Position numbers and translations under genes: made by a program. Source: Macrostomum hystrix (lineage: Eukaryota > Animalia > Platyhelminthes). Taken from it: 64,000 nt of DNA. Shown here piece by piece: positions 111-44,866 of this stretch. Within the stretch, counting starts at the first letter, position 1; each line of letters opens with the position of its first letter. Below the pieces are notes generated by a model. The model had not been told where the DNA came from. It ran no database searches and saw nothing but the letters and a program-made list of their open reading frames with translations. The stretch spans positions 2,976,001 to 3,040,000 of the forward strand of contig CATNEN010000029.1 of assembly GCA_950097015.1 (NCBI GenBank). Reading direction: 5' to 3'.

Positions 111-121
111 TCCCTACTCAC

Positions 122-6810: not shown

Positions 6811-6855
6811 GACTACTGCTGCTGAAAGACCAAAGCACTCGGCATGAGGATCTTG

Positions 6856-12820: not shown

Positions 12821-12882
12821 CTTACTGTTTAGTGCACTGATTCATATGGGGCCAGGCTCTTCCTATCTGTCCACCAAGCGAA

Positions 12883-15369: not shown

Positions 15370-15660
15370 GCTGCCCTAAGTGGGCCAGATATGCAGCCGA
15401 TAGCACAGCCGCAGCTATTGCGCGGCGCATCTGATGGCTGCGTACGGCTGTTCAGTCCATGGACTGGGCCAAGGACTGAGCCACTAGTCCATGGTCGCCA
15501 TACTCTTCTTCAATTACCCCAGCTAATGCTGGGATACCCATTAAAAATGCTGAGTTAATTGTCTTGCTAAATGACACAAATAGTTCCACTGGAGTCAGGA
15601 ATCGAACCCCCGACCTTCAAGTCGTGAATCCGACGCTCTAACCACTAGGCTACAACCACC
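15370..15660 (-). mobile_element. tRNA-derived SINE (family B), near full length
   Basis: Head GGTTGTAGCCTAGTGGTTAGAGC...GGTTCGATTCC. Body CCAGCATTAGCTGGGGTAATTG...CATGGACTGAACAGCCGTACGCAGCCATC, shared with the other copies. Confidence 0.75.
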
Positions 15661-16739
15661 CAGTTGCCCAAATAATCAGTGACAAAAAAGAGAGAAAAAC
15701 GCGCACTAGGGACGCAGCAATACTTTCTCTTTTCTATTTTGTTGCTAAGCAATTGAATAGCACATTCAATTGGAGAATCGAAAATTTGTTTAATTATAGT
15801 CGCTGTATTGTGTCTGAAATGAGGTCTTTGTAAGGAAGATTTTCACTTCCAGCATTTCCAGGCAGGGCGTGAGTTTATAATCAGGCTAGTCTACTAGTCT
15901 GACAGCTTTTAGCCAACTTGAGAAAAAACGGAAGCCAGATAGAAGATCGATTACCTATATAAAGCGGTCTGCATTCACTAAATCTCATTTACTTACCCCG
16001 CTAGACCTAGGGATGAGACACAGATTGCTGAGGCTGGATTTAATTGGAAAATTGGCAATATAGGCAAGCTGAGAGAGAGAGAGAGCCGTTGCTTGTCTGT
16101 AAGTACCCACTAGAAGAAGAAAATGTTAATATGAGGCAGCAGCAGCAGCAGCAGAAGCGGACTAATAATAAGTGTAACGTTTGGTCAAGCCTGATCGTAT
16201 TTTTTCGACCCCTCAAATTTTTATAGCAACTCTCCCTCGCGGTGCCATTCGAGGGATTCTGCAGCCAGGCAGAATGAGTCTGATTGGCTAGCTGTGCTGG
16301 AAGAGAATTAGATCAGGAAAGAAGGGAAAGCCATGGAGGAATATTTGTGCCCTGGTCACTGCTAGCCTTTCCGTCATTAATTTTTGGTTGCCACCGAAAA
16401 CATTATTATTACGATCAACGTCAAACAAAAAATGTCAGGAAGCCAGGTACAAATGCCTGGAGAAAGCTATCTCTCTCCTATCTGCATCGAAACAAAGGGC
16501 ATTGGGACATTGAAAAAAAAATCGAAAGGAAACGAAGGAAAAAAGTATAGATTTTTAAAAACCACATTCGTAAGGATCCACTGTAACCGTTTCCCTTATT
16601 ACCTCATTCCCTACTGCCCTTTTCTACTTTTGGGCAAGTACGTTGGCGGCAAGCTAACTGTACTTGATGGGCCGAATAAAGAATCTAAAATATGACAGCG
16701 GGCTGGATTGATAGAGGAGAGACAAGACGGAGGAGAAAT

Positions 16740-17550
16740 AAGACAGGAAATATGAGACAGGTAAGAGATGAGACAGGTAAGAGATGAGACAGGGGAGAGA
16801 TGAGACAGGGGAGATATGAGACAGGTGAGGGTGAGACAGGTGAGGGTGAGACAGGTGAGGGTGAGACAGGTGAGGGTGAGACAGGTGAGGGTGGGGCAGG
16901 TGAGGGTGAGACAGGTGAGGGTGAGACAGGTGAGAGTGAGACAGGTGAGGGTGGGGCAGGTGAGGGTGAGACAGGGGAAGTGAGACAGGTGAGGGTGAGA
17001 CAGGTGAGGGTGGGGCAGGTGAGGGTGAGACAGGTGAGGGTGAGACAGGTGAGAGTGAGACAGGTGAGGGTGGGGCAGGTGAGGGTGAGACAGGTGAGGG
17101 TGAGACAGGTGAGGGTGAGACAGGTGAGGGTGAGACAGGTGAGGGTGAGACAGGTGAGGGTGGGGCAGGTGAGGGTGAGACAGGGGAAAGTGAGACAGGT
17201 GAGGGTGAGACAGGTGAGGGTGAGACAGGTGAGGGTGAGACAGGTGAGGGTGAGACAGGTGAGGGTGATACAGGGTGAGGGTGAGACAGGGGAAAGTGAG
17301 ACAGGTGAGGGTGAGACAGGTGAGGGTGAGACAGGTGAGGGTGAGACAGGTGAGGGTGAGACAGGTGAGGGTGAGACAGGTGAGGGTGGGGCAGGTGAGG
17401 GTGAGACAGGTGAGGGTGAGACAGGTGAGAGTGAGACAGGTGAGGGTGGGGCAGGTGAGGGTGAGACAGGTGAGGGTGAGACAGGTGAGGGTGAGACAGG
17501 TGAGGGTGAGACAGGTGAGGGTGAGACAGGTGAGGGTGATACAGGTGAGA
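16740..17550. repeat. 15-bp minisatellite (GTGAGGGTGAGACAG), preceded by GAGACAGGGGAGAGAT units
   Basis: About 48 copies, related to the 9299-12040 unit. Confidence 0.95.
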
Positions 17551-18519
17551 GTAAGCATAGGAAGAGGCCAGAGGCCAGATTCGGAAGCTTCGCATGAGCC
17601 AGATGCAATCCCGTATCTGGCCTGCTGACCCACTGTTCCAGGTCTTCACGTCTTTCTTTGTTGGAAGGTTTCTGGGTTCTTATCAACAAGAAGCTTCCAA
17701 ATCACATGATTAAGTGAGTCTTAATTGTGGCCCTTCTCAGCTTAGCCCAGTTACACGTTGGCCGGCTGCTAAAGCAATACAGAAACTCTCTAGCCTTGAA
17801 AATGTACACTATGTTGCTTAAAAAGCTGAAGTTCACTTCAAAAGCTGACGCTTGGCGACTAGGGTATGAAAGATGAATAACTGGCAGCTGACCATAATTT
17901 AAACCGAATGGGACTTGAATGAAAAATATCAAAATGCGTTTAGCTACCGCTGCAGCAGGGCATAACTTCCAGTTTCCTTGAACACAAGAAGCTTAACTGG
18001 TTCACTCTTTTCTTTGCAATAAGAATATTCTAAGGCTTACCATCTACTGCAACAGTCCAAGCGTCAGTCAACTATCCCCATCCGGGGGAAGAGGTCAGTC
18101 AACAATCGATGACGCTTCGGATGGATGGCAGAATCCACAAGGATATCCCAACCCCACTCCGCATTTCTAATTCCCCGAGAGCTTCCCTGGGGAGAAAAGT
18201 GACCGGAGTCGCCAGGACCTTTTCAGTTACCATCCGGAGGGGATAAGATGCGAGGGAAATCTAATTATAAAAGTACATTTAACTCCAGGCACCGGGAAGG
18301 ACATTCTGGAGTTTCACACCAAATCTTGCATTAGAAGACAAAATAAGCGGCCCATATAGTAGATTAGTAAAATTTGTGAAAGAAAACATTTTAATATTTG
18401 GATAATAAGACCCGTGCCCGGATGGAAATACAAATTTCTGTTCAGACACGACTGTGATAAGTGTTTGAAATTTTATGCCATGCATGACATTTTTTATTAC
18501 AGAAAATAGTAATGGACCC

Positions 18520-18672
18520 TCAATTACCCCAACTGATGCTGGTACCCATTTAACAGCTGGGTGAACTGAAGCAACGCCGAGACAAGTGTCTCGCCGAAGG
18601 ATACAAATTGTTCTAGTGGAGTCGGGAATCGAACCTTCGACCGTCGAGTCGTGAGTCCGTGAGCTACAACCC
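18520..18672 (-). mobile_element. SINE family B, 5' half
   Basis: GGTTCGATTCCC B-box, plus TTCACCCAGCTGTTAAATGGGTACCAGCATCAGTTGGGGTAATTG shared with the 15370 and 45815 copies. Confidence 0.7.
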
Positions 18673-19617
18673 TCTTGAGATGCATAATGGTAAGGATATA
18701 ACAGAGCAAAAACTGAAACAGATGGGAATTCCGACTCTCACAGCAGGGGTGCTAGAATATTTTAGAATCTAAACAGAAGGTAGGATTATCTAGGGATCTA
18801 AGCAGAGAAATAGGGTAACGGGTATAATTCTGTATTTTAGATGTTCAGAAATCTGAACTCTGGGAAATTTAGCTTTGGTGATATTTCCAATTGGCAAAAT
18901 ATTTTAGCGCGCCCAAGAGGCTGAGAAGGGAGGTAGGTGCAGAGGAGGTCACGCTTGGAGTCAATCCATTTCTTATCCACCGCTCCACCGGCCCAGGGCT
19001 CATCTAATCCCCTGAGCGAGGACTGAGCGGGTCAGCAAGCCCTAGCTTGCCCGAGCGTGCCCGTGAATCAGAAATGCTGTGTGCAGCTCAACTTCATATA
19101 TTAATATGATGAAAAGGAAAAGGCGATAGACTGTATCATGAAAGCAAAGAACGGGTGAGCTTCTTATTCCATTCTTCATCGATAGGCCAAACGGGAGGAG
19201 ACAGGATTTATTTGGAATCCACGATGAGAAATCTCTATATGAAATGTATAAAAAGAGCAAAATAGTATTACTGTGCGACCCAGACCCAATACCAGACCAC
19301 TCCTAATACTCGGCATCTCATGCGTACTACGAAAGGCGAAGTTTGCCTTGGAGAGTTTGGAATGGAATTTTTTCTGCATCCAGGAAGAAGCGACGAGAAT
19401 CGGTCAGGGTTGGACTCGGGACGTCCTTGAAGCTATTTTTTGCCTCAATTTTCCAGCAATGCTAGATAAGCGGATTATCTCTAGTCACTGAGCGACCGGC
19501 ATCCTACTCTGGCGCGCCCCGCCCCTCATCGAACTGTGCTGCCTGATAGGCAAGGCAGTTGTGGAATTCTAGGCATCTAGTTCTAGCCATAGCTATGGCT
19601 GTAGTATTTATAGGCAT

Positions 19618-19850
19618 CGCTGTTGAAGCTCAGTGGTTGGAACTCCAGACTTGTAACGAATAAGTCGGGAGTTCGAATCTCAACCATCAAAGGAATGCAA
19701 TTCATGTTTTCGTGCAAGAAACTTAGTTCCCTATTACTTCATTAAACCCAGCAGTTAAAAAAAACTGTAGAAAGGTTCAATATGGTTGTATTTGGTTGAC
19801 TGTGGCAGCTTCTGAGTGCCACTGGCTGTATATATGGCCCAACTGGGCTA
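19618..19850 (+). mobile_element. Degenerate SINE family B copy
   Basis: GCTCAGTGGTT...GGAGTTCGAATC head, ACCCAGCAGTTAAA central motif and ATATGGCCCAAC 3' motif. Confidence 0.5.
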
Positions 19851-22068
19851 GGTGTAAATTCTATCTATCATAGTGGCTTAGAAGAACAAATGCCTGAATA
19901 TATTATACATCATGAAAAAACACCCACAGAGAAATAGTGCAAGTTGTTTTTATTTACAAATACTTTAAAGAATAACATATAATATAAAAAGAATAAATGA
20001 CATACAAAATATTTAGACAACAAATATATATTAAGAGACTGTCTAAGACATAACATGCACACACATAACTATTTTTCTACTATAAACATTGATTAAAAGC
20101 ATGCTAGCAACACTTACTATTGATAACAGCCCTAACATATTTTTACAGGCACGTTGTATTAGTGCTTTAAGTTTTCAATTACTTTAATTTTTAATAGAAT
20201 GACTTCTCAATAAAAATTATTTAGGACTATAAGAATAAACATCAAAAATATACTAGAGATTTCTATAAGTTAAGGGGATATATGGTACTTACCAAGAAAC
20301 TACTCAGAATATGTAACTCCTATGCCTTTAAAATGATTTTGGTACACATTAACTTTGTTAAGTGCCTGATTTCTTGTTAGTTCTAAACATGTTAAAAATT
20401 ATTTAAGTTGCATAACTTTTATTTCTGTGCTTCAACTTTTCATTTTGTGGAAAATATTTTGGATAAGGTGCATGTAACCTTGTAGAATGGGTTGTAGAAT
20501 GATGGCATCTTTTCTTATATATCTACCTCACTTTTCTATTTTTTTCTATTCTTCTTTTTAGCTAAAGTGAAAGATACATAGAGAAGAAAGCTGGTATGAA
20601 AGAAAAAGATAATAAGATAATACATTATAGGTTGGTACAAAGTTGAACCTAAGTGCCAGTCATTTTGGTGACAGAGATTTTGATGACAAAACTTTATGGA
20701 ATATCTAAAAACCTATAGAACCAATAGACATGTGCTTAAAAATCAAGTGCAACTCATTTACTACACCTTAGCATGTGATATGATGAAATATTCCGAATAA
20801 ACATGTAATTATATTCTTAAATCCAGGAGGTAATTTTTATTTTCTGAACCACAATAAATTTTTCTGTAGCAATAGACAGAAATGGAGTACATAATATATG
20901 TAACAATGCTTATTAAATTTATGTTGTAGGAGTGACAAATAGCCATATAAAAGACAAATATATCTCAGGTATTGAAAAAGCATGATAATTGTAAATAGCA
21001 GTTGGGTCAGTTAGATTTTTATACATAAGTAGCTGGTTCCTTTTACAGAATGACTATGCAGCAAGGTTTCAAATAATGTTATATAGACCAGATTTATTTG
21101 CTTACTGATGCCCTGTCTAGTACATTGTATTCAACAATCCATAACACCACCACAAAAGAATCAGTGATTGAATTGTGTGGTTGCATGGTTGTAAGTCAAG
21201 TTCTATGGCTTAGTAACAAGTCACTGTTGAGAGACAAGATAGAAATCATTTTGGTGACATAAAAGTTGTTTGTTTTAGAAACAATAGGCCCCTAGTATTA
21301 AATTGACAACATTAAAATTTATTGAAGAGTAGATTTTATAAAAACAGACTGTAACTCTTTATATTTATAGAGTGGACTAGATGATTGATGATTCTGTATT
21401 ATAACAATTAGCAATCTTCTAGTTTTGCACGTTTAATTCAAACTGTTTAAAAAACGACAGTTAATGACAGTTTTGTATAACAACCAAGAAACAATGTGAC
21501 TAACAACCAATGAAAGATGACTGACAGTGTCTATGAGTCAATTGCATGTTACTCAGATGTCATAGGCCTAGTAGTATGCTCAGACGGCATAGGCCTAATA
21601 GTGTGCCACCCAGAAAAGGATGTTCCCAAAGGTGTTGTGCAAGTGTGCGCACTATTATGCCATCAGTAGAGTTTATGCCATCAGTTGAATTTAATGCCTT
21701 ACAATTATATTAATATTACTATAGTACAATGCACTACCATTTTGATGAAAAGGGGATAAGAAAGACTAAAAAATAACCAATGACATTTAAAATTAATAGC
21801 AACAAAAGTGCTAAATTATATATTAGTATGACATAGTATAAGTAAGCTACAAAAGCTCTATTGGTATATATTATATATTTTTACTTAGCTAGTTTCCAAG
21901 CATAATTGTTTTTGGATCAGTGAAAACAATTCTTGCTGCTTCATTCTAGGCTAGCTTAATTTTCCAAAACAGGGGCAGCCAGTGTTTAAAGAATGGTTTT
22001 TTATTAACGACTCGTTTTAGGTAACGAACATAATAATTCTAAAACATTCTAGGAAATTTGCGTGCCGT

Positions 22069-24520
22069 CACCCGTATATACACTTTTGACCGTATATACC
22101 ATGCAAAAACGGGCCAGTTTTGGCTAACATATCATGATATATGATATCGTAGCACGGTATCATAATGTAAAATGCATATCTCTTCCGCGCGATTTCAAAT
22201 GTCTTTCGGTTTACTGTACACAGCTCAGTATTTCTTTGGTTAGCTATGTAATTTTACTGAAATTTACTGTGCTAGCTCTAGGCTCTACTACTTTTCTCCA
22301 TTTTCACAGTGTATTTAGTTTTTTTCACTTTTAGCATGGAGATTCGCATACTTGGCCTAGTCTTATAGTAATAGCTACTATAATTAATATTATCATATAT
22401 AATTGACCTGTCTAATCATTGTGGTCTATTGAGCTAGGCTAATATTTTTTCTTACTATTATCTGTATGGTAGCAGGTAGCTAGGCTATTGCTATCTGAGC
22501 GAACAGGAAATATATTAGTATATGTAGTAGGCCTAATATATAACATATATATTATCTATGCTATATGGTACCAGTTATATAGCAAGCAAAGCAAGCAAAA
22601 AATGGTAGCTTTTAGATGCTGAAATGGTATAAACAGTATAATTCATACTGACTTTCGAATGGCTAATTGCCTAATACTATATGAATTGCTTGATATTTAT
22701 ATCTTTTTTCATTGACACTACTCTAGACCTAATACAAATTTGCTATTAGTTTCAGTATAAATATGAGTATAAATTTGTATTGTTGGTTTAAATATGATCT
22801 TTTTAATATAGGTTGTATACCTACAACATACCTACTGCTAGGGGTTGTAGCCTAGTGGTTAGAGCATTGGACTCATGACTTAAAGGTTAAGGGTTTGATT
22901 TGAGGGTTTACTAGCATTACCTAGGGTAATTGATTATGGGTATGGTGGCCTCCTAGTTCATGGACTGAACAGCCATATGTAGCCTTGATGTCCCTCTGAA
23001 CAACAGCTATCCTACTTTACTGCTATCCTATCCTCTCTGTTGGCCCTTCTTGCTGTCCTACATTCCCTGCTGCCCTATCCTCCCTACTGTCCTACCCTCC
23101 TTACTGCCCCACCCTCCCTGCTGCCCCACTCTCCCTCCCTACTGTCCCGCATTTCCTACTGGCCCTCCCTGCTTCACTACCCCTCCTTGCCCTACCCTCC
23201 CTGCTGTCCTGCCCTCCCTGCTAGCTCTACCTGCTGTCCTACCCTCCCTGCTGTCCCACCCTCCCTGCTGTGCTGCCCTCCCTGCTAGCCCTACCTGCTG
23301 TCCCACCCTCCCTGCTGTCCCACCCTCCCTGCTGTCCCACCCTCCCTGCTGTGCTGCCCTCCCTGCTAGCCCTACCTGCTGTCCCACCCTCCCTGTTGTC
23401 CCACCCTCCCTGCTGTCCCACCCTCCCTGCTGTGCTGCCCTCCCTGCTAGCCTTACCTGCTGTCCTACCCTCCCTGCTGTCCCACCCTCCCTGCTGTGCT
23501 GCCCTCCCTGCTGTCCCACCCTCCCTGCTGTGCTGCCCTCCCTGCTAGCCCTACCTGCTGTCCCACCCTCCCTGTTGTCCCACCCTCCCTGCTGTCCCAC
23601 CCTCCCTGCTGTCCCACCCTCCCTGCTGTCCCACCCGCCCTGCTGTGCTGCCCTCCCTGCTAGCCCTACCTGCTGTCCCAACCTCCCTGCTGTCCCACCC
23701 TCCCTGCTGTCCCACCCTCCCTGCTGTGCTGCCCTCCCTGCTAGCCCTACCTGCTGTCCCACCGTCCCTGCCGTCCCACCCTCCCTGCTGTCCCACCCTC
23801 CCTGCTGTCACACCCTCCCTCCCTGCTGTTCTGCCCTCCCTGCTAGCCCTAGTACCTGCTGTCCTGCCCTCCCTGCTAGCCCTACCTGCTGTCCAGCTCT
23901 CCCTGCTGTCCCACCCTCCCTCCCTGCTGTTCTGCCCTCCCTGCTAGCCCTCCCTGCTGTCCTGCCCTCCCTGCTAGCCCTACCTGCTGTCCAGCCCTCC
24001 CTGCTGTCCCAACCTCCCTCCCTGCTGTCCCACCCTCTCAGCTATCCAGCTATCTCTCCCTCCCTGCTGCCCCACCCTCCCTGCTGTCCCACCCTCCCTC
24101 CCTGCTGTCTCACCCTCCCTGTTGTCCCACCCTCCCTGCTGTGCTGCCCTCCCTGCTAGCCCTACCTGCTGTCCCACCCTCCCTGCTGCCCCACCCTCCC
24201 TGTTGTCCCACCCTCCCTGCTGTGCTGCCCTCCCTGCTAGCCCTACCTGCTGTCCCACCCTCCCTGTTGTCCCACCCTCCCTGCTGTGCTGCCCTCCCTG
24301 CTAGCCCTACCTGCTGTCCCACCCTCCCTGCTGTCCCACGCTCCCTGCTGTCCCACCCTCCCTGCTGTCCCACCCTACCTGCTGTCCCACCCTCCCTGCT
24401 GTGCTGCCCTCCCTGCTAGCCCTACCTGCTGTCCCACCCTCCCTGTTGTCCCACCCTCCCTGCTGTGCTGCCCTCCCTGCTAGCCCTACCTGCTGTCCCA
24501 CCCTCCCTGCTGCCCCACCC
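22069..24520 (+). repeat. Left TIR: ~1 kb unique segment plus ~1.4 kb C-rich modular minisatellite
   Basis: 22069-~23230 is the reverse complement of ~37430-38598. I found two internal substitutions, two 1-bp homopolymer indels and one mismatch at terminal position 3. The array of CCCTCCCTGCTGTCCCA-type units runs to ~24520. Confidence 0.93.
22841..23005 (+). mobile_element. Decayed family-B SINE embedded in the left TIR (mirror copy at ~37660-37824, -)
   Basis: GGGGTTGTAGCCTAGTGGTTAGAGCATTGGACTCATGAC head and CATGGACTGAACAGCCATATGTAGCC body match the 15370-15660 SINE. Confidence 0.75.
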
Positions 24521-24650
24521 TCCATGCTGGCCCAACCCTTCATTTTGTTGATACCCACCGTTTTTTGTTCTTCCCACCCTTCTGGCTCCGTCCCTCTACT
24601 GCTTTTTATTCTCTGAGATTTCATGTTTTTGCTCCACACTTTTCAGCACT

Positions 24651-27600
24651 ATGGGGAGGCGGAAGTTATCTGTTGCTAAGTCATCAATATCATATTACCG
24701 TAAAAGTCACAAGAGGCCTCGAGTTTTGCGAACCACAGTAACGACGCAGTGCAATAATATGTGAGTTTGCTCTGTTTAGAACCTTAGTTTTTCTACTATT
24801 TTTAGAGTAATATTTTTTCCTTTCAGGGACGAAATCCATATTGATGATAACCGTGAGGCTGTTTATGTGCCTGAGGAAGAATGGAAAGATGTACCTGAAG
24901 GCAGGGATCATCTTGATCCATACGATTGTACAGTGCCCTCAAGAAGCCGCACGAAAAAGTCACCCAGTCGTTTCAAGCAGTTTTGCGACGATGAATCCGC
25001 TGCTTGGAATGACTTGTTTGAGTCTGGAGCTCTTCTCAACGATTTTGCCACCTACTTCAATAGGCACCCATGTGTTATCTGTGGTGTCTCGTCCGACAAC
25101 ATATTCCGCTGTACAAAATGCCACCTGCTGTCAGTGTGCACTGCCTGTCTAGAAGTAAAGCATGCACACAACCCACCTCATGTTGTACAACACTGGAATG
25201 TAAGGAAAGCCTTTTTGTTCATAATTCTTCAGATTTCAAGAAGTGCATACAATATTTTTCCTCTTCTGAATGTATCTCATTCTACAAGGGCAAATTCTTT
25301 GAAGCTGTCGAATCGAATGCTCGACTGGCTCGAATGTGTGCTTGTAATTCAGCAATTGCTGGCGTATTTCCTGTTACTGTCATCACAGACAATGGTAAAA
25401 TTATTTAGACATTGTTAAATTTGTTTATTTCTGTGTTAATTAATTTTAATATAATTGATTGATGGCAAAAGCTCGCATGTTCTTAACCCATATTCTAGAT
25501 GCAAGTGAGATGCAAGTTGATTTAGAAGTTTGCTCCTGTGCAACTTACCATTCTGCTCTTCTGGTACATGGCTTCTGGCCTTTGCAAGCAAGACCAGAAT
25601 GTTCTAAAATGTTAACTGCTATTGCAGTGGAACTTCTACTACTGCTTGATTCGCTTAATTGCAACTGCACTGCATCCTTATCATCTCTCTGTTGGGCTCT
25701 TAAGTGTTATCGTGAGTCAATTTGGACGCATAAATACCCATCCGTAAGTTTTACAGGCACCATAGCCCCTGACTAACAAGTTATTCTATTTTATCTACGT
25801 ATTTCAGTGTATTCCTTACTTCCTGTAACACTTTGCAGCTCGATCTATTTCGAGCGCTAAATTTGGCTGGCGCGTTTAAATCGTTTCGACGTGTACTTCA
25901 AAGCTTTCGATGGGGAGAAAAAACAACATGTCCCGCTTGTTATTTGGTAATTTTATTTAAATTCATTTACAAATTACTCCGTTTTCTATTACCTTTCCAA
26001 TCCCACTATTTTACAATTACCATGACTTGTATGAAATCTCACAGGTCAACGCGAATGCCTCTAGTGAAGAGCCAGTTTTTTTAATGATGGACGGCTGTTT
26101 TGGTCTTCGCCATCGAAAATCTGCTGGAAATGCCGCTCCACCACCTCCCTCTGGCTTTTTTCTTGACGTTGACCTCACTGAGAAATGTCCACCCTCGACA
26201 GGACACTGTGCAAACTGGAATGCAGGTGGAAGAGGTCGAAGTCTAGCGACTTCTTCAGATAGTGCTAAGCTAGATGTCTTTGGTGCATTCTCTGGTTCCT
26301 GCAGACATTCTGCAATAACTTATTTGGCCGATATGACATCGACTGGCGAACGGTAAATTGTTTTTGGAAGCATAAAATTACCGTTTTTAATGACCTCACT
26401 ATTTCGTGTTTTTTCAATTTTTATTTCTTCTTAGACTTAACTATTCCACGACTATGATTGCTCAAATGATTCGGGATGTTCCGCCAATGGTGCCAATCGT
26501 CGTCTCCTACGACATCGGGTGCAAGCTAACCGGTCGCTTTAACGACTCAAGGCTGTCTTTTGCCATTCCGGCTTTTCATTCCTATGGGCATGTTCTACGC
26601 TGTCAACTTTCCCATGGTATACGCTCTGTTCAGTCAGTCGGCCTGACAGATGGCGAGAGCGTAGAGCGCGTCTGGGCAACGCTTCGACGATTCGGCCCTC
26701 AGCTGAAAGAGATGGCTCACGATAACCGTCGGGAATTTTTGAACTATCTAGCGAATACTATCAACTTCCAGTGTATCACAAAGATCAGTAAGTATTAGTT
26801 CTATACATAGTGAAGCAGAAATTGCGTAAAATAGTGGAAACCCAACAAAAGACTGCGGCATATAAGCAGACAAAAAACCCATAGTTTAACCGATACAATG
26901 CGCTAAAATTAAAATCTTACTTTAGCTACCTGGCTTATCGGCCGAAAAGCAGTGGAGAGAAAGGCAATCCAGCAGTTCCAAGCTGAGCTTTCGGCTTTTC
27001 TACTCCAGAACAATTCTTCGAGTAAGTTGTTGCCGTTGCATTTTAAATTGGAGTTTAAATGAATTTTGTGTCGGTAGTTTATGGACGAGGGTGTGGATAC
27101 CATTTAAGGAATTATCTTTTTACCTCATTAACTGACCTCTATAGTGAGCCTGGACGATTTTCTTAACGCTGCGGCCGGTTGGAGGCAGGAGCTTCTCGAT
27201 ATACTAACTGCACATTCCAAAGCATCTTCACCCAAATCTAAAGCCATTCAAAAGCTCTATGGAATTGCCTGCGAGCGCCGGTATTTGATTGAACATGTCG
27301 GGACAGAACGTGGACAGCGCATGCAAAAGCTTCTTCGAGTTTCTCTTAACAAACTGCTTTCCAAATCAAAAGCGATCTGCTCGAGTTTTAACAGTGCTCA
27401 TCCTACAGACCAACTAGATCAGAGCCACTTCATTAAGCCTGAAGCACCCGGCTTCGAGGAACTTGTGAGCATCAGAAACCAAGCTCAAAAGGTACATGCT
27501 GTGAAGCTTCGAGACCTGTACCTTCGTATCCAGGAGGAGTCGCGTCTGGTAGCTGCGGAAGCAGAGAGGACTTCGCTATTTCTCACTGAAGCGGCTCGCA

Positions 27601-28001
27601 AAGCACGTATGGAAGTACAAGCAGCTCGAGAAGGTCCATTGGCTGCCGCACTGTCTATGAGAGAAAATGGCATTCTTCAGATACTCCAAGCTCACTTAGC
27701 AGCCTTCCCGTCAGAAAGTCAAGCAGTTCAATCTACTTCGAGCAGCATTTCCTGCCTGGAGACAGCACGGGGTAAAGCGCATAAAGCATGATCACATTTT
27801 CATACTGACATTTCATATTTGCAAATGTTGTGTGGCGTAATGGTTAAATAATTAATTTCTGATGCTTGTACCCTGGATTTTTTAGCGTCCAGTGCTTCTG
27901 GGGACGAATCCTCGAGTTCACAATCTTCATCGCCGGAAAGTGATTTCAAGAGCGAATTTGAATGCACATCCGAGAGCGAATCCGAGTATGAATCAGACTA
28001 A
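24651..28001 (+). CDS. KDZ transposase with N-terminal CxC (CxC2/3-like) cysteine cluster; 10 exons, 813 aa, apparently intact
   Basis: Exons 24651-24760, 24827-25199, 25289-25394, 25499-25743, 25839-25946, 26045-26352, 26435-26787, 26926-27021, 27145-27771, 27886-28001. All introns are GT-AG with consistent phases. Motifs: CVIC..RCTKC..CTAC..H..PH..W, CPAC, MMDGCF, SCRH..DM..GE, SYDIGC, FHSYGH..CQ, G.TDGESVER.W (D-D-E triad intact). Acidic tail. AATAAA at 28069. Confidence 0.9.
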
Positions 28002-29019
28002 TCTAGGACACAGCGACTGAGCTAGTTTTCTATTTAGCTTCGAGTAACATTGCTCACTTATTTATTTTAATAAAGCTAATTTAACCATTGCAATTTTCTA
28101 ATTTGTAAAAAATGCATATAAAAAATGTGTTCCCATGTATGCTGTGAACCTGGGACATGGGACACTCACTGCTTTACGTTTAAAAGTTGAACTTCCTATT
28201 GTCTTGCTTTGTAATGTTTGACGCAACTATTGTCGAAAAATGTCGAAATCAGGTAGTATTTAGCACGGTTGTATATTACATTTTTAAGCGCAATCTCTAT
28301 CTTCTTTGAAAGCAGGGGCCAAATTTATAACTAGCAGACCACTAGCATTTCCTATGCCTATGGATTAAAAGTATTTTACAGTATTGCTTTTCCTTAAAAT
28401 ACTCGTACTGGTAATGCTAAATAGTTACTGCAACTGCAACTGCTACAGCTCGTAATGCAAATTTTCATAAATATTCTTGTGTGTTATTTAATATGCTCTT
28501 CCTATGTAAGTTTGCATAAAAATAGAACGAAAAATATCGAAAACAATTATTTCTCTTATGAGTACGAACGAATGCAGGAAATGTTACAGTTGCATGATAA
28601 ATGTAGCCACTTTCATTCTTTTTAAATAGTATTATATTTTTTGCAAGAACAGCGAAACTACCCTAGAGGCAAACCCTAGGAGTGTCTGTACAATTGTGGT
28701 TTAGCCCAGCTTCCATGTGCCCTGAAAAGCTGCTTCTAAGGGCTAATTGGTAATTGAAAGCAGAAGTCCGAATTATGCCGAATCCGAAATATTTTACTTC
28801 TTTCTTACAGTTTTGAAACTATTTTTACCGCATAGATAACAGCGCCATAACTTTAAGGACTACCATGGTACATATGCATGCTAACATCTGCCGCCATGCT
28901 GTTTCGCCGTTAGTTGTAAATAGCTGAACGCCATGCTATATAGAATAGCAGGGTTCTGATAGGAACATTTTACGCCATGTTGTTTCTAATTACAGCGCCA
29001 AGCTGTTTCTAATAAAGTG

Positions 29020-29950
29020 CGCCATGCTGTTTCTGATAACAGCGCCATGCTCTAAGGAACCATGGTACATATGCATACCAACACTCGTCGCCATGCTGTT
29101 TCTGATTACAGCGCCATGCTCTAAGGAACCATGGTACATATGCATACCAACACTCGTCGCCATGCTGTTTCTGATAACAGCGCCATGCTCTAAGGAACCA
29201 TGGTACACATGCATACCAACACTCGTCGCCATGCTGTTTCTGATAACAGCGCCATGCTCTAAGGAACCATGGTACATATGCATACCAACACTCGTCGCCA
29301 TGCTGTTTCTGATAACAGCGCCATGCTCTAAGGAACCATGGTACATATGCATACCAACACTCATCGCCATGCTGTTTCTGAATACAGCGCCATGCTCTAA
29401 GGAACCATGGTACATATGCATACCAACACTCGTCGCCATGCTGTTTCTGATTACAGCGCCATGCTCTAAGGAACCATGGTACATATGCATACCAACACTC
29501 GTCGCCATGCTGTTTCTGATAACAGCGCCATGCTCTAAGGAACCATGGTACATATGCATACCAACACTCGTCGCCATGCTGTTTCTGATAACAGCGCCAT
29601 GCTCTAAGGAACCATGGTACACATGCATACCAACACTCGTCGCCATGCTGTTTCTGATAACAGCGCCATGCTCTAAGGAACCATGGTACATATGCATACC
29701 AACACTCGTCGCCATGCTGTTTCTGATAACAGCGCCATGCTCTAAGGAACCATGGTACATATGCATACCAACACTCGTCGCCATGCTGTTTCTGATAACA
29801 GCGCCATGCTCTAAGGAACCATGGTACATATGCATACCAACACTCGTCGCCATGCTGTTTCTGATAACAGCGCCATGCTCTAAGGAACCATGGTACATAT
29901 GCATACCAACACTCGTCGCCATGCTGTTTCTGATTACAGCGCCATGCTGT
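29020..29950. repeat. 69-bp satellite inside the transposon
   Basis: About 13.5 copies of GCCATGCTGTTTCTGATAACAGCGCCATGCTCTAAGGAACCATGGTACATATGCATACCAACACTCGTC, with a partial degenerate copy at ~28845-28910. Confidence 0.95.
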
Positions 29951-30019
29951 ATAGAAAAGCATGGCGCTAGCTATCGTAAAGTTAAAGTAAAGGAAAGCAA
30001 AACTACTGTCCTACTGGTT

Positions 30020-30150
30020 AATGCTACCCTCTCAACTACCCCAGCTAATGCTGGCACATTTAACAGTTGGGTGAACTGATGAAAAACAGTTAAGCGTCTT
30101 GCCAATGGACACACATTTTTCTAGTGGAATTGATATTCGAACTCTGAGCA
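30020..30150 (-). mobile_element. SINE family B fragment nested in the KDZ element
   Basis: CAACTACCCCAGCTAATGCTGGCACATTTAACAGTTGGGTGAACTGA matches the other family B copies. Confidence 0.6.
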
Positions 30151-32870
30151 TGAGTAAAAAAGCCTTTTATTTAATCAAAATCTCTGTAAGCGAACCTGGA
30201 ATAGGATCGGAAAGCTGGCTCTAAATTACAGAATATAGCGTTGCTTTGGACAGAGCGACATCTATGCAAAAGCAGTTAATCAACATCATAGGATTTCTTG
30301 AATTCAACAGCCAGGTGAAATTTTCAGATAAGCTGTGACGAACCGTACAATGTTACGAGTCTGCCGCCGACAACCGTAAGTGTCTCGTATTTATCCTACT
30401 ATATTAATCCTAAAAGTACTGGGAAACATAGGCATTACGTACTGTTTGAGTAATTTACGGGACTTAGCCTGTAAGTAATTTTTAAACTTTAATTGTTTAA
30501 GGGGTGCTACGTACTGCTGGAGACTGCTGTCTTATATGTCACAGAAGACAGCGAGAGACAGCGAGTTCAGGCAGGAAACTTTAGAGTGATTGTGCTAAAG
30601 CATATTGGAATATGCCGCCGCCCCAGTCCATACATGTACAATTGGCTCGTACCAAACCAACCTCGCAATTGAACTTTAAGTCAAAGCGGGCTCTCGAGAC
30701 CATGCAGCCAGCGTCTTAGCTGTCAACTTCAACTCACGACCATTCAAGTCTCAACTCAAAGGATTCTGCTGGTGGGATATTAGATCTAGGGATTAGATAG
30801 GTGTATTGGACTTTTGATGTTGGGTTCTTGCATCGGAGACTGATTTAAATAGACTTAGTAAGTCAAGTAGATTTATGCAACTTCTACTATATACATGTAC
30901 CCCTGTATATTGTGATACCCCTGATCGAATTAGCTGAGAATGTCACACTTGTAATGGTTTTCGAGCCTAACGAGATTTTATTAGTTTTTAATTCTCTTAA
31001 GGGCAGCGTGCGGTTAGGTTGTCGTCTACGGGAAAATAATGCACTGAATTCAACTTGGATTACGTAAATTTCCAGTCAATTGTAATGAGCCGATATTCTC
31101 GTCTCTTTTGTGCGAATAGCGCGCGCTTTATTATTTACATCGCTTACATTTGAAATGCAATGTATATATGTATACATTGCATACATATGCATTCTGTATA
31201 TCCAGAATGCTCAATCGAGCATATTATTTATTTTCGAAGCATAGCGCCCATAGCGCCATAGCGCCAAATCATGTGTTATAGCAATGTTGTCTTCATTGCT
31301 TTTATGTTGTTGTACTAGGTTATGTTACTACAATGTTGACTCCATGTTGCAATGGCAATATATATATTTCTTACCGCATCAAGCTTATCATCCTACTGAT
31401 AGCAGATCAGATGGAATTCTAAGTTTGACTATGTCGATAAAAATATTGATGAAAGTGTGTGTGCTATATAATTATATAATATAATATAATATTCTAAAAA
31501 GTTAAGGATGTGGTATGCTAAATTAGTCAAGATCCATCAAAATTAAGGGGCATCCCGAAATTACTTTTGTCAGTGGTACCCCCATCAAAAAGACTATAGT
31601 CACGCCAGGCAGGGGTGTACCGACTTTGAGCGGACCCCATTTGAGAACCGCTTTATCTAGAGAGATGAGATTTGATGGATTTTGATGGGATTTCATGTCC
31701 CGTACTCTGGGATAGAAGTAGAAGAGATCCCCGTCGAAAACCGGAGTCTAAAAGACAGCCTGCGGCGTCAGAATGTCACCCAGTGTAAATTGTATCTCCC
31801 CTGTGTATTTCGTCAAATTTTCTAGGTGACTTTCCAGGTTAATAAGTTCGAGGAGAAATCATTTGTAATCATGAAACTAACTCAGTCGTGTAGGAAATTG
31901 TTTCTAGATTGATTTCCAATCGAATCCGACTCGATAAACTGTGCTCAAATATTTTGGGACACCGACGACAGCCATATACTACTGACAGTAGTCAAAGTCG
32001 ATAAAATTACAAAAAATTAGTAAGAAAATTGTCATAACTTTTTTCTTCAAAAGATATTGAGCTCGGACCGCCTAGAATGAATTTCCCGTCCGAAAATAGT
32101 TTAGAAAACACAGTACCTAATAGTATGGAAGCAGTAGCTAGCAATCGGCTAGCTATTGCGTGGCTCATCTAAGTCTACGTACGGCTGTTTCATCCATGGA
32201 AAGTGTTTTAGCCTTGCTAAAGGGCAAAAATAGTTCTAAGAGATTATGAAGACAGAATCATCGCTGAAGACAGCGCCAGCCTTAAAGACAGCGCCAGCCC
32301 TGAAGACAGCGCCTTCCTCGAAGACAGTGCATGCATCGAAATCCAATGTACCTTTTAATTTCAAAAAAGAGAATAAGCAAATAACAAGACAAGCAGCACT
32401 ATACCACTGAAAATGAATAACAAGTAACAAATGGGACGAAGAAAACAGTAACAAAAATTGTTCATAAAATAAAAAAATGTCATCATTTTTTCTCTTTAAA
32501 CAGTGATATGGAAAACACGTGTATTGCACCATTTAACTGGATGGTTGTATCATACTTGCAACAAAACACAAAAAATAGAAATGCAATCAGACGCTTCGTA
32601 TTAACTCTTGTACAAACTGGCGTATTATTAGCGGGGTGCTATCACAAGCTCGAAATTTCACAACACCGAAAAGTATTTTTTCATTAGGTCGAAACTTTAG
32701 TTTTTAGTTTTTAGGCCTAAATCAGGGGTCGGCAAACTTATATGGCTCGAGGGTCACAGAGAGAGTACAAGAGACGACAGCGGGCCGTGCTGATAGAGGT
32801 GACTTCATATAGAGGTGACTACTTTCAAAGATCACTTCATTATCACTTCATCTTAATATTTATCGCGGCT

Positions 32871-34232
32871 TCAATGAAGACGTACAGGAGTATAAGAAAC
32901 GGCAACCTTCCGGCAGACATTGACGCCAGCCGACCCGCCAGCACCAGTCGATGACGCAGAAATTCTGACGCTGTTAGCCGACACCGTACTACTGGACTGG
33001 TCAACAATGATCGGTGGTAGGTCGGCAAAAGTTTTTTTTTCAAAGAAAATAGACTCCTTTTTTGACCATATAGCGGCTAAGTCCTTTTTGCACAGCCGCT
33101 GCGGGTGACAGTCTTGCCGAACACCGGTTGGCCAATTAATCCACCGACCAAAGCGGGTGTGATTGGAGTACTGGAGCTGTCGGTTTTTAATAACCTTCGC
33201 TGCAAGGAAAAAGTAAAAACGCGAGTATGATTCAAGAAGCAGTGCTGGCCGGTATGGTACCTGCTCATGAATTCAAGACAATGCTTTTGACGAACTAACA
33301 GAAAAATACGAGTACTTACAAAATTTTTTTTGCAAAAGCTCGCTAACCGCGACACGAAGACCAGCAGCGGTAGTGAGGCCACCACTATCAGTATTTGCCA
33401 AAGCAGATTGAAGAGCCTAAAAATAAGATTCCCAGGGCTACAACGGTGTGGCCACATTCAATAACATACTCGTAGAATTGCGCCAGATCCAAAACAACAT
33501 AATAATACTCTTTCCTAAATCCACAAAAAATTTTATACTATCTTACCAAAGCAATATTTCGCTTTTCGCAAAACCCTGTCACGTCTTCCGACTCGAAGAC
33601 GCTGGTTACTCCGCCGCTTTTTGGATGAAGCAGTACGATGGCATGTAAACCAGCTGAGTCAGCAGAATCAATCTGAAATTCCATATACCCTCGTTGAGTT
33701 ACATTGACTTAAGGAGAGTAAGTAACATCCGAAGCCTACTTAAAAACGTTTGAATAAAACGGCTAAATATTCCTGAATAAGTCAATTGCATTTTTTCTTA
33801 CTTACAAGCTTACTAGCAGCCTTTCGAAGCTTCCGTTTGGTTACATCTATGCTACTTTTCCGTTGATCAGCAGCATTTCTCAACAAAATACGCTCCGCGT
33901 CTCCTAAGTTTGCGTACGATGCTCGCAAACTTTCCATCTGGTCTGAAAGGCGGAAAACGGATTAGTTTGAATTTTGACACCGAGCTAAATAGCAGTAAAA
34001 AGAGAAAGTGATCGAAAGAAGCTCATACAATTTAGCTACCTAAAGACAAGAAAATTGTCATGGTTACAATGTCAGGCGAATCCTCGAGTCAAGACGATAA
34101 AGATATAACAACAGCGTGAAGAAGATTGATTAAAAACTACTCATTTCTACTACTACTCCATACGAAGCATCACTCACGAGTAATACTAACACCCGGAGTG
34201 CAGTTTCGGCGGCAATGCTCCTTCCAAGACAT
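32871..34232 (-). CDS. Transposon partner protein, 5 exons, 247 aa; HMG-box-like N-terminus and a C-terminal WP-GV..P motif
   Basis: Exons 34232-34178, 33942-33806, 33672-33547, 33416-33320, 33199-32871. All have GT-AG sites (gtgagt, gtaagt, gtaaga, gtaagt), matching phases and no internal stop. The protein begins MSWKEHCRRNCTPGVSITHQMESLRASYANLGDAERILLRNAADQRK and contains WINWPTGVRQDCHPQRLCKKDLAAIW. Confidence 0.82.
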
Positions 34233-34359
34233 TCTGAAAGCACAAAAACGTTGAAAAATATAAAATAACAGAACATCTAACCACAAAAGAAGAAAATGCA
34301 CCCAACAGTATAAGAAAGGAAGGACCTAAAGGTAGGGAGGGTGGAGGGGGGAAAATAGA

Positions 34360-37300
34360 GGTGGGACAACAGGGAGGGTGGAACAGCAGGTAGGGCTAGC
34401 AGGGAGGGCAGCACAGCAGGGCGGGTGGGACAGCAGGGAGGGTGGGACAGCAGGTAGGGCTAGCAGGGAGGGCAGCACAGCAGGGCGGGTGGGACAGCAG
34501 GGAGGGTGAGGCAGCAGGTAGGGCTAGCAGGGAGGGCAGCACAGCAGGGAGGGTGGGACAGCAGGGAGGGTGGGACAGCAAGGAGGGTGGGACAGCAGGT
34601 AGGGCTAGCAGGGAGGGCAGCACAGCAGGGAGGGTGGGACAGCAGGTAGGGTGGGACAGCAGGGAGGGTGGGACAGCAGGTAGGGTGGGACAGCAGGGAG
34701 GGTGGGACAGCAGGGAGGGTGGGACAGCAGGGAGGGTGGGACAGCAGGGAGGGTGAGACAGCAGGGAGGGTGGGACAGCAGGGAGGGTGGGACAGCAGGG
34801 AGGGTGGGACAGCAGGGAGGGTGGGACAGCAGGGAGGGTGGGACAGCAGGGAGGGTGGGACAGCAGGTAGGGCTAGCAGGGAGGGCAGCACAGCAGGGCG
34901 GGTGGGACAGCAGGGAGGGTGGGGCAGCAGGTAGGGCTAGCAGGGAGGGTGGGACAGCAGGGAGGGTGGGACAGCAGGGAGGGTGGGACAGCAGGTAGGG
35001 CTAGCAGGGAGGGCAGCACAGCAGGGAGGGTGGGACAGCAGGGAGGGTGGGACAGCAGGGAGGGTGGGACAGCAGGGAGGGCAGCACAGCAGGGAGGGTG
35101 GGACAGCAGGGAGGGTGGGACAGCAGGTAGGGCTAGCAGGGAGGGCAGCACAGCAGGGAGGGTGGGACAGCAGGGAGGGTAGGACAGCAGGTAGGGCTAG
35201 CAGGGAGGGCAGCACAGCAGGGAGGGTGGGACAGCAGGTAGGGTGGGACAGCAGGGAGGGTGGGACAGCAGGGAGCGTGGGACAGCAGGGAGGGTGGGAC
35301 AGCAGGGAGGGTGAGACAGCAGGGAGGGTGGGACAGCAGGGAGGGTGGGACAGCAGGGAGGGTGGGACAGCAGGGAGGGTGGGACAGCAGGGAGGGTGAG
35401 ACAGCAGGGAGGGTGGGACAGCAGGGAGGGTGGGACAGCAGGGAGGGTGGGACAGCAGGGAGGGTGGGACAGCAGGTAGGGCTAGCAGGGAGGGCAGCAC
35501 AGCAGGGAGGGTGGGACAGCAGGGAGGGTAGGACAGCAGGGAGGGTGGGACAGCAGGGAGGGTGGGACAGCAGGGAGGGTAGGACAGCAGGTAGGGCTAG
35601 CAGGGAGGGCAGCACAGCAGGGAGGGTGGGACAGCAGGTAGGGTGGGACAGCAGGGAGGGTGGGACAGCAGGGAGCGTGGGACAGCAGGGAGGGTAGGAC
35701 AGCAGGTAGGGCTAGCAGGGAGGGCAGCACAGCAGGGAGGGTGGGACAGCAGGGAGGGTAGGACAGCAGGGAGGGTGGGACAGCAGGGAGGGTGGGACAG
35801 CAGGGAGGGTAGGACAGCAGGTAGGGCTAGCAGGGAGGGCAGCACAGCAGGGAGGGTGGGACAGCAGGTAGGGTGGGACAGCAGGGAGGGTGGGACAGCA
35901 GGGAGCGTGGGACAGCAGGGAGGGTGGGACAGCAGGGAGGGTGAGACAGCAGGGAGGGTGGGACAGCAGGGAGGGCAGCACAGCAGGGAGGGTGGGACAG
36001 CAGGGAGGGTGGGACAGCAGGGAGGGTGGGACAACAGGGAGGGTGGGACAGCAGGGAGGGTAGGACAGCAGGTAGAGCTAGCAGGGAGGGCAGCACAGCA
36101 GGGAGAGTGGGACAGCAGGGAGGGTGGGACAGCAGGGAGGGTGAGACAGCAGGGAGGGTGGGACAGCAGGGAGGGTGGGACAGCAGGGAGGGTGGGACAG
36201 CAGGGAGGGTGGGACAGCAGGGAGGGTGGGACAGCAGGGAGGGTGGGACAGCAGGTAGGGCTAGCAGGGAGGGCAGCACAGCAGGGCGGGTGGGACAGCA
36301 GGTAGGGTGGGACAGCAGGGAGGTTGGGACAGCAGGGAGGGTTGGACAGCAGGGAGGGTGGGACAACAGGGAGGGTGGGACAGCAGGGAGGGTAGGACAG
36401 CAGGTAGAGCTAGCAGGGAGGGCAGCACAGCAGGGAGAGTGGGACAGCAGGGAGGGTGGGACAGCAGGGAGGGTGAGACAGCAGGGAGGGTGGGACAGCA
36501 GGGAGGGTGGGACAGCAGGGAGGGTGGGACAGCAGGGAGGGTGGGACAGCAGGGAGGGTGGGACAGCAGGGAGGGTGGGACAGCAGGTAGGGCTAGCAGG
36601 GAGGGCAGCACAGCAGGGCGGGTGGGACAGCAGGTAGGGTGGGACAGCAGGGAGGTTGGGACAGCAGGGAGGGTGGGACAGCAGGGAGGGTGGGACAGCA
36701 GGGAGGGTGAGACAGCAGGGAGGGTGGGACAGCAGGGAGGGTGGGACAGCAGGGAGGGTGGGACAGCAGGGAGGGTGGGACAGCAGGGAGGGTGGGACAG
36801 CAGGGAGGGCTAGCAGGGAGGGCAGCACAGCAGGGAGGGTGGGACAGCAGGGAGGGTGGGACAGCAGGGTGGGACAGCAGGGAGGGCAGCACAGCAGGGA
36901 GGGTGGGACAGCAGGGAGGGTGGGACAGCAGGGAGGGTGGGACAACAGGGAGGGTGGGACAGCAGGTAGGGCTAGCAGGGAGGGCAGCACAGCAGGGATG
37001 ATGGGACAGCAGGGAGGGTGGGACAGCAGGGAGGGTGGGACAGCAGGTAGGGCTAGCAGGGAGGGCAGCACAGCAGGGAGGGTGGGACAGCAGGGAGGGT
37101 AGGACAGCAGGGAGGGTGGGACAGCAGGGAGGGTAGGACAGCAGGTAGAGCTAGCAGGGAGGGCAGCACAGCAGGGAGGGTGGGACAGCAGGGAGGGTAG
37201 GACAGCAGGTAGAGCTAGCAGGGAGGGCAGCACAGCAGGGAGGGTGGGACAGCAGGGAGGGTGGGACAGCAGGGAGGGTGGGACAACAGGGAGGGTGGGA

Positions 37301-38598
37301 CAGCAGGGAGGGTAGGACAGCAGGTAGAGCTAGCAGGGAGGGCAGCACAGCAGGGAGGGTGGGACAGCAGGTAGGGCTAGCAGGGAGGGCAGCACAGCAG
37401 GGAGGGTGGGACAGCAGGGAGGGTAGGACAGCAGGTAGAGCTAGCAGGGAGGGCAGGACAGCAGGGAGGGTAGGGCAAGGAGGGGTAGTGAAGCAGGGAG
37501 GGCCAGTAGGAAATGCGGGACAGTAGGGAGGGAGAGTGGGGCAGCAGGGAGGGTGGGGCAGTAAGGAGGGTAGGACAGTAGGGAGGATAGGGCAGCAGGG
37601 AATGTAGGACAGCAAGAAGGGCCAACAGAGAGGATAGGATAGCAGTAAAGTAGGATAGCTGTTGTTCAGAGGGACATCAAGGCTACATATGGCTGTTCAG
37701 TCCATGAACTAGGAGGCCACCATACCCATAATCAATTACCCTAGGTAATGCTAGTAAACCCTCAAATCAAACCCTTAACCTTTAAGTCATGAGTCCAATG
37801 CTCTAACCACTAGGCTACAACCCCTAGCAGTAGGTATGTTGTAGGTATACAACCTATATTAAAAAGATCATATTTAAACCAACAATACAAATTTATACTC
37901 ATATTTATACTGAAACTAATAGCAAATTTGTATTAGGTCTAGAGTAGTGTCAATGAAAAAAAGATATAAATATCAAGCAATTCATATAGTATTAGGCAAT
38001 TAGCCATTCGAAAGTCAGTATGAATTATACTGTTTATACCATTTCAGCATCTAAAAGCTACCATTTTTTGCTTGCTTTGCTTGCTATATAACTGGTACCA
38101 TATAGCATAGATAATATATATGTTATATATTAGGCCTACTACATATACTAATATATTTCCTGTTCGCTCAGATAGCAATAGCCTAGCTACCTGCTACCAT
38201 ACAGATAATAGTAAGAAAAAAATATTAGCCTAGCTCAATAGACCACAATGATTAGACAGGTCAATTATATATGATAATATTAATTATAGTAGCTATTACT
38301 ATAAGACTAGGCCAAGTATGCGAATCTCCATGCTAAAAGTGAAAAACACTAAATACACTGTGAAAATGGAGAAAAGTAGTAGAGCCTAGAGCTAGCACAG
38401 TAAATTTCAGTAAAATTACATAGCTAACCAAAGAAATACCGAGCTGTGTACAGTAAACCGAAAGACATTTGAAATCGCGCGGAAGAGATATGCATTTTAC
38501 ATTATGATACCGTGCTACGATATCATATATCATGATATGTTAGCCAAAACTGGCCCGTTTTTGCATGGTATATACGGTCAAAAGTGTATATACGGCTG
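34360..38598 (-). repeat. Right TIR: ~3.1 kb G-rich modular minisatellite plus ~1 kb unique segment
   Basis: GGGAGGGTGGGACAGCA-type units, the reverse complement of the left array. The outer ~1.1 kb mirrors 22069-~23230. Confidence 0.93.
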
Positions 38599-38934
38599 GT
38601 GCCGTAGTGTGCCAGTGTCTGGGCCCATGCCATGAGCGGCTCTTTTAAAAGTTATCATAACGACATTCTACCTAAAATAAATAGCACAGCCTTATAGCTA
38701 TAAAGAATCAGATAAGTTTAACTGTGTTTGAGAATGCATATATATATATTTGTTAGGACTATCTTTTGTATTTGTTGAGTTTGCTTTTCTATTTAAATGG
38801 CGCAGGTTTGACTTCGTCGTTACATTCTGTTTATTGTATTCAGAAATTATCTTTCATTGTGTTTTGATTGTATTTTTGGCTCCTTTGCATTATAATACGG
38901 ACTGTTAAGCACACCATAATACAAATTTCTAATT

Positions 38935-44866
<5,932 letters not shown>

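Follow-up and report, generated by a model that had tools for sequence, protein, structure and literature searches.

Transposons of the Kyakuja-Dileera-Zisupton (KDZ) superfamily are among the least characterised DNA transposons, and full structures with ends and target-site duplications (TSDs) are known mainly from fungi and from the Zisupton elements of fish. Fungal Kyakuja elements have a 7-bp TSD and CA..TG termini with no terminal inverted repeats (TIRs) (Kojima 2025, PMC12730594), and TSDs of 8 bp are characteristic of both Zisupton and Dileera (PMC12730594; for Dileera, Zisupton-1_PGr there and KDZ1 in PMC11343200). The Dileera elements KDZ1 to KDZ3 of Cryptococcus are 9-11 kb long with TIRs of ~236 bp and 8-bp TSDs, and their transposition has been shown experimentally (Huang et al., PMC11343200). 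Zisupton proteins combine CxC4, KDZ and SWIM domains (PMC11343200); they are 1,166-1,400 aa long in Pristionchus, and are encoded by multi-exon genes in fish and nematodes (PMC9297572). KDZ proteins are widespread in animals as 'uncharacterized proteins', occurring in molluscs, echinoderms, amphioxus, fish and the flatworm Macrostomum lignano, and all database entries for animal KDZ proteins, which number in the hundreds, carry this label. Here we describe a 64-kb stretch of the Macrostomum hystrix genome (contig CATNEN010000029.1, positions 2,976,001 to 3,040,000; hereafter the window, whose coordinates are used throughout), which very probably contains a full-length copy of a KDZ cut-and-paste DNA transposon. 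The copy is structurally complete and looks young, and its KDZ transposase gene is intact, intron-rich, transcribed and correctly spliced. It is an unusual, well-preserved build of a known class, and not a new kind of element.

The element spans positions 22069-38598, a length of 16,530 bp without the duplication. Both arms are flanked by direct copies of GTGCCGT, at 22062-22068 and, immediately outside the right arm, at 38599-38605. The two copies are identical and the bases adjacent to them differ; for fixed ends, a chance match at seven of seven positions has a probability of about 6e-5. The ends are CA..TG, the left one opening with CACCCGTATATAC and the right one closing with GTATATACGGCTG (reading CAGCCGTATATAC on the minus strand), and are mismatched with one another at base 3. 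The locus therefore shows both terminal repeats and a TSD, the combination by which a transposon boundary is recognised. Just inside each end lies a doublet of the 10-bp motif CCGTATATAC, at 22072-22081 and 22090-22099 on the plus strand and mirrored at 38568-38595. Exact copies of this motif are found at four places in all 64 kb, two per terminus and none elsewhere, and we consider the doublet to be a putative protein-binding site.

The left TIR (plus strand) is near-identical to the right (minus strand) over 22069-23318 and 37347-38598 respectively. Global alignment of the first interval with the reverse complement of the second gave five differences in ~1,250 bp (99.6% identity), comprising three substitutions, at 22071, 22227 and 22320, and two 1-bp indels. 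The non-repetitive part of the arm occupies 22069-23050, or 982 bp. A preliminary description of this DNA had reported the GTGCCGT duplication, the CA..TG termini and about 1.1 kb of unique TIR with some five differences. Direct reading of the sequence at both ends bears out the duplication and the termini, and the alignment bears out the number of differences; the unique part of the arm is slightly shorter than had been stated.

Each arm also contains a degenerate fragment of a tRNA-derived short interspersed element (SINE), at 22841-22990 on the left and at ~37681-37822 on the right. This fragment is 75-85% identical to ~310-bp repeats in the M. lignano locus L005 (one of several KDZ loci considered below) and to window positions 15600-15657 and 45858-45925. 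Its tRNA-like head is visible in the sequence, although neither ARAGORN nor Rfam called it, and Rfam and tRNA scans of the whole element returned no matches. Its matching position in the two arms shows that they were copied or homogenised as a unit. The SINE itself is common to M. hystrix and M. lignano, with full copies of ~310 bp at 952-1255, 14094-14403 and 23250-23573 of L005.

Inward of the unique sequence, the arms run into subterminal arrays of a 17-bp unit. The left array (23051-24539, ~1.5 kb) holds ~90 copies with the G-rich strand on minus, and the right array (34360-37614, ~3.25 kb) is inverted and holds ~198 copies with the G-rich strand on plus. G-quadruplex-type motifs follow the same polarity: all 29 of the left array are on the minus strand, and all 78 of the right array are on the plus strand. 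Within the arrays these motifs always lie on the outward-running strand, and the rest of the element contains none.

The transposase gene lies on the plus strand next to the left array. To define its structure we used contigs from four public sequencing runs (X1, X2, X5 and X6) aligned to 24560-28960. Nine GT..AG introns are skipped in contigs of X2, X5 and X6, representing three runs from two studies, while contigs of the DNA run X1 are unspliced over the gene. The spliced contigs delimit a transcription unit at 24646-28569 with ten exons (24646-24760, 24827-25199, 25289-25393, 25498-25743, 25839-25945, 26044-26351, 26434-26787, 26926-27021, 27145-27770 and 27885-28569), all of whose joints are GT..AG. 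When the ten coding exons are joined, the coding sequence (24651-28001) forms one uninterrupted open reading frame (ORF) of 813 aa. The spliced contigs yield exactly the exon count and protein length of the preliminary description, which had been drawn from the genomic letters and had proposed mapping RNA to the exon junctions; all nine introns are confirmed in this way.

The catalytic core is encoded by the exons at 26044-26787, and contains D330, D443, E491/E494, a CRH motif at 400-402, H465, H469 and C473. Pfam searches covered the single exons of the window and the relatives. The KDZ family PF18758 matched two exons, with E-values of 4.8e-8 (33.4 bits) and 1.4e-23 (84.2 bits) against a cut-off of 26.6 bits. 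Alignment with 84 relatives showed that D330, D443, E491, E494, C400, H402, H465, H469 and C473 are 94-100% conserved, and no column with conservation of 94% or more is lost in the window transposase, C400-R-H402 included. The D-D-E triad is thus intact, as had been claimed, with D330, D443 and E491/E494 all retained. Towards the N-terminus there is a B-box-like Cys/His cluster together with CxC motifs (CAC, CSC, CNC and CPAC), which align with relatives whose CxC1/CxC2 matches pass the Pfam threshold. Neither SWIM nor CxC4 came up when the exons of the window and ten relatives were scanned. The window transposase itself was not found in the protein collections searched; its best relative there is an M. 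lignano protein (P0151, PAA55188.1), which is collinear and 44.6% identical over 719 aa.

Two variants of the gene can be distinguished in the public runs. Over ~2,900 bases, the contig of X2 and the window disagree at only 3, and this near-identity implies that the M. hystrix copy, or one near-identical to it, is transcribed. A second variant, ~0.7% divergent and also intact, is present in X1 (DNA), X5 and X6. Its indels are either intronic or consist of a 15-nt in-frame insertion. When the four runs are pooled, and one change peculiar to X2 is included, the variants are separated by 7 synonymous, 10 nonsynonymous and 12 intronic base changes, with 6 more in the 3' untranslated region. The resulting dN/dS of ~0.43 is a weak signal, coming as it does from 17 coding changes only. 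Where they can be separated in X1, the variants have word depths of 56 and 78, and since both are found in this DNA run there must be at least two copies or alleles in the DNA of the species. Any activity of the element would be hinted at, indirectly, only by these two intact variants. At 28485-28960 the X1 word depth climbs from ~110 to 170-350, and several contigs are broken there, leaving loose ends, which indicates more highly repeated sequence in that part.

At least one transposase mRNA acquires its 5' end by host spliced-leader trans-splicing. An X5 contig opens with 23 non-genomic letters before position 24646, and these match, letter for letter, the 3' portion of the 35-nt spliced leader of M. 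lignano (PMC8629364), which marks the host as a Macrostomum flatworm. The leader is joined 4 nt upstream of the transposase ATG, at an AG acceptor (24645-24646, plus strand) in the context ttttcAG/cactATG, where the stroke marks the joint. Among the papers found by a search on spliced-leader trans-splicing of DNA-transposase mRNAs, no title or abstract describes such a case.

KDZ loci of M. lignano provide the nearest relatives of the transposase (grouping support 99/98). They belong to families distinct from that in the window, with transposases only 35-45% identical to it. One locus, L004, contains at 6646-16569 (NIVC01000166.1) a 9.9-kb KDZ element that encodes PAA89046.1. Its TIRs are 259 bp long and 98.5% identical, with the ends CACCCGTG...CACGGGTG, and it is flanked on both sides by CTCATT, a repeat of 6 bp, or of 7 when its first C is included. 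This element and the window element begin with the same seven bases, CACCCGT. Compared with the window, the L004 element has 259-bp TIRs and neither the arrays nor the ORF2 block described below. This sharing of a terminus with an array-free relative links the ends with the KDZ gene, and it also implies that the arrays are specific to the family of the M. hystrix element. We suggest that the 17-bp G-rich arrays may be a family-specific, foldback-like elaboration of the arms. The L004 element is apparently unannotated as a transposon, and we found no paper that describes the M. lignano KDZ loci as transposons. Long inverted repeats in L002, L003 and L005 were considered as KDZ ends and rejected, being SINE copies or nested repeats without CA..TG.

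A second gene, ORF2, is predicted to face the transposase gene. A splice-aware ab initio model on the minus strand (32871-33942) has four exons (33942-33802, with the ATG at 33937; 33707-33547; 33416-33320; and 33199-32871, stop included) and encodes 240 aa. The model introns of 94, 130 and 120 nt are all GTAAG..YAG, and the ATG is preceded, at a distance of 5 nt, by a splice-acceptor signal (a pyrimidine-rich stretch that closes with CAG), which mirrors the arrangement in the transposase gene. A block of ~45 residues (33042-33206, minus strand) is matched in the M. lignano loci L001 and L003, where it sits beyond the 3' side of the KDZ genes and in convergent orientation. The invariant residues of this block, numbered within the last exon (32874-33197, minus strand), are L8, Y10, W19, W22, P23, V26, D29, P32, L35, L40, I50 and F52. 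In L001 the match has an E-value of 4.5e-10 when a 133-aa ORF is used as the query, and of 1.1e-8 with the 240-aa model. The equivalent spliced model in L001 has an intron at the same position, just before the block, and its N-terminal part is weakly collinear with that of the window (2 of 500 shuffles reach the score). L001 carries the closest relative of the transposase as well as an ORF2-like gene in the same place and orientation; the KDZ gene of L003 is more distant. AlphaFold modelling of the last ORF2 exon from a three-row alignment gave a mean pLDDT of 60.5, confidence being limited to a small strand-helix-strand piece of ~35 residues, and Atlas matches were at chance level (0.63 or less). 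The second convergent gene of the preliminary description is therefore backed in part, in that the M. lignano comparison supports the four-exon model; the gene itself is a modelled one. An inward-facing two-gene layout is plausible, and by analogy with other two-gene DNA transposons ORF2 may have an accessory DNA-binding role.

Between the two genes lies an internal tandem array (29020-29948) of 13.5 copies of a 69-bp unit, 98% identical. Tandem repeats are found downstream of the ORF2 block in the window, L001 and L003. In the two M. lignano loci they follow the block immediately, and in the window they begin ~500 bp past the ORF2 stop, with a short 18-bp repeat and then the 69-bp array. L001 thus resembles the window in having a convergent ORF2-like gene followed by a tandem array; no TIRs were found within 10 kb on either side of it. 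The arrays downstream of the ORF2-like block are young in all three loci (window 29020-29948, L001 22060-22723 and L003 27859-28872), with units of 69, 45 and ~48 bp. Gene predictors take such arrays for long ORFs, and a called 476-aa gene in L003 overlaps one. ORFs of up to 468 aa that run through the 17-bp and 69-bp arrays of the window were rejected as repeat artefacts.

Based on this organisation, we propose that the transposase would recognise the ends of the element, probably through the CCGTATATAC doublet unique to the two termini, and would excise the element and reinsert it with a 7-bp staggered cut. Transcription would start somewhere in the arm or array, and trans-splicing would then remove the long, repeat-rich upstream RNA. 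As the upstream RNA would be stripped in this way, expression would need no precisely placed promoter, which suggests a simple expression route for a mobile element. The predicted inward-facing ORF2 product (~240 aa) would serve as an accessory factor.

Several observations weigh against this interpretation. No empty site, second insertion or polymorphism of the element turned up, the reads having been examined at the transposase gene only. The identity of the two arms does not date the insertion and is not an insertion clock. Pfam CxC1 matched one exon below its cut-off (E=0.0017, 18.9 bits against 26.9). Run X2 had been classed automatically as DNA, and we took it to be RNA on the grounds that every intron is spliced out of its contig. 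Only a single contig, from a single run, shows the spliced leader; the ATG within the leader is in another frame than the 813-aa ORF and opens an upstream ORF of 11 codons. The second gene is probable, being an ab initio model that the M. lignano comparison supports in part; no exon of it has a Pfam match, no homologue of 73-233 aa was found in the databases, and its block was not found in L002, L004 or L005. Finally, the flatworm transposases lie equally far from the fungal and from the other animal KDZ clades on the tree described below.

With these points in mind we considered other explanations for the locus. The element could be an old, fixed and immobile insertion whose transposase gene has been co-opted by the host, and is expressed and conserved for that reason. 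The mRNA is indeed processed like that of a host gene, by spliced-leader trans-splicing; nonsynonymous changes are under-represented between the variants (dN/dS ~0.43, on 17 changes only); the annotation of many KDZ proteins in animals is that of a single 'uncharacterized' locus with isoforms; and no second insertion of the window family turned up in reads examined at the transposase gene only. A co-opted gene would have no need, however, of a perfect 7-bp TSD, of 1.25-kb arms that are 99.6% identical or of a terminal motif doublet conserved at both ends. Both variants occur in the DNA run X1 (word depths 56 and 78), and M. lignano also has a KDZ element with TIRs and a flanking repeat (L004), so that co-option seems to us unlikely. 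We give even less weight to a composite origin, in which the arms would be of a foldback-type, non-autonomous element moved by some other transposase, with the KDZ gene a mere passenger. Long arms made of tandem sub-repeats are a foldback hallmark, and the related L004 element lacks such arrays; yet the 7-bp TSD and CA..TG ends are those of Kyakuja (PMC12730594), not a 9-bp duplication, and the CACCCGT shared with the ends of array-free L004 ties the termini to the KDZ gene. A composite is on these grounds very improbable.

It was also important to consider whether the inverted arms could be an assembly artefact, arising from a fold-back or a chimeric read. Near-identical inverted repeats of kilobase length and satellite-like arrays are hard to assemble. 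Against this, the 9.8-kb interior is non-palindromic and holds two different genes (the second one predicted), the arrays are unequal (1.5 versus 3.25 kb), the arms differ at five positions, and both ends adjoin unique flanks with a matching 7-bp duplication. In addition, independent short-read contigs span 24560-28960 and spliced RNA contigs span the transposase gene. An artefact of this kind would be a considerable surprise, and a full-length KDZ transposon remains by far the most convincing account of the locus.

The surroundings of the element were also inspected. A host gene for a regulatory subunit of cAMP-dependent protein kinase (PKA) begins ~335 bp past the right end of the element, which places the element in the upstream region of that gene. 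The first coding exon (38920-39126, ATG at ~38935) matches the RIIa dimerisation domain in Pfam (1.5e-9), and a pseudosubstrate-like site, RRGAVSGE, lies in the ORF that follows (40307-40600). Positions 1-20000 of the window show a strong strand-composition skew in 2-kb bins (GC up to 0.51, AT up to 0.70).

To place the KDZ element among its relatives we used both its structure and a tree of KDZ proteins, none of which was labelled as Kyakuja, Dileera or Zisupton. On the tree the window transposase and five flatworm proteins form a clade of their own (97/97), whose position relative to the fungal clade, and to a clade of mollusc, echinoderm, amphioxus and fish proteins, is unresolved. At this one insertion, both structural features of Kyakuja are present, namely the 7-bp TSD and the CA..TG termini. 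The duplication of 7 bp departs from the 8 bp of Zisupton and Dileera, and the 813-aa protein departs from the Zisupton architecture of CxC4, KDZ and SWIM in a protein of more than 1,100 aa. Judged by TSD length and termini, the element behaves like Kyakuja rather than like Zisupton or Dileera. The label Kyakuja-like, given in the preliminary description, fits in these two structural respects.

The preliminary description had also not recognised the architecture as one described for animals. We found no paper on KDZ elements of flatworms, nor any that reports an animal element of Kyakuja type. The novelty was nonetheless overstated: animal KDZ proteins are widespread, multi-exon Zisupton genes are known (PMC9297572), and large multi-gene KDZ elements with TIRs and TSDs have been shown to move in Cryptococcus (PMC11343200). 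More tentatively, Macrostomum may carry a distinct, undescribed animal KDZ lineage that is Kyakuja-like in its 7-bp TSD and CA..TG termini and is set apart by a small, conserved accessory gene that points towards the transposase gene, by foldback-like kilobase arms with G-quadruplex-prone 17-bp arrays (in the window family), and by use of the spliced leader to obtain translatable mRNAs from any upstream start. We regard this as a real possibility, rather than as the expected outcome. The M. hystrix copy nevertheless offers a complete, RNA-backed animal example with a Kyakuja-type TSD, a candidate accessory gene and foldback-like arms. It should aid repeat annotation in Macrostomum, where multi-exon elements easily pass for host genes. 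If the family is currently mobile, it would be a candidate for a native cut-and-paste vector in the only flatworm genus with working transgenesis.

In foldback elements the inverted arms are long and consist, in their inner portions, of tandem sub-repeats, and MuDR has two genes transcribed inward from its two arms and a 9-bp TSD. The M. hystrix element resembles both in layout only and no shared ancestry is implied. Foldback elements and MuDR are members of different transposase superfamilies, with different lengths of TSD. With Zisupton of fish and diplogastrid nematodes, as relayed from Bohne et al. 2012 in PMC12730594 and PMC9297572, it shares an animal host, a multi-exon transposase and TIRs. 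Zisupton differs in its 8-bp TSDs and longer CxC4/SWIM proteins, compared with the 7-bp TSD and 813 aa seen here. Cryptococcus KDZ1, KDZ2 and KDZ3 are likewise large, with TIRs, TSDs and a KDZ transposase, which in Cryptococcus is combined with CxC, and they have extra ORFs of unknown function. Contrary to the M. hystrix element, they have 8-bp TSDs, TIRs of ~236 bp, no subterminal arrays, a strong CxC1, a fungal host and proven mobility. The element also resembles Kyakuja-1_LB and Kyakuja-2_LB of agaricomycetes (PMC12730594), which combine a KDZ transposase, a 7-bp TSD and CA..TG termini with large size and an extra gene. Fungal Kyakuja elements have no reported TIRs and carry a TET/JBP dioxygenase as cargo, whereas the M. 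hystrix element has 1.25-kb arms with kilobase arrays, a small predicted protein without a known domain, an animal host and a transposase gene with nine introns.

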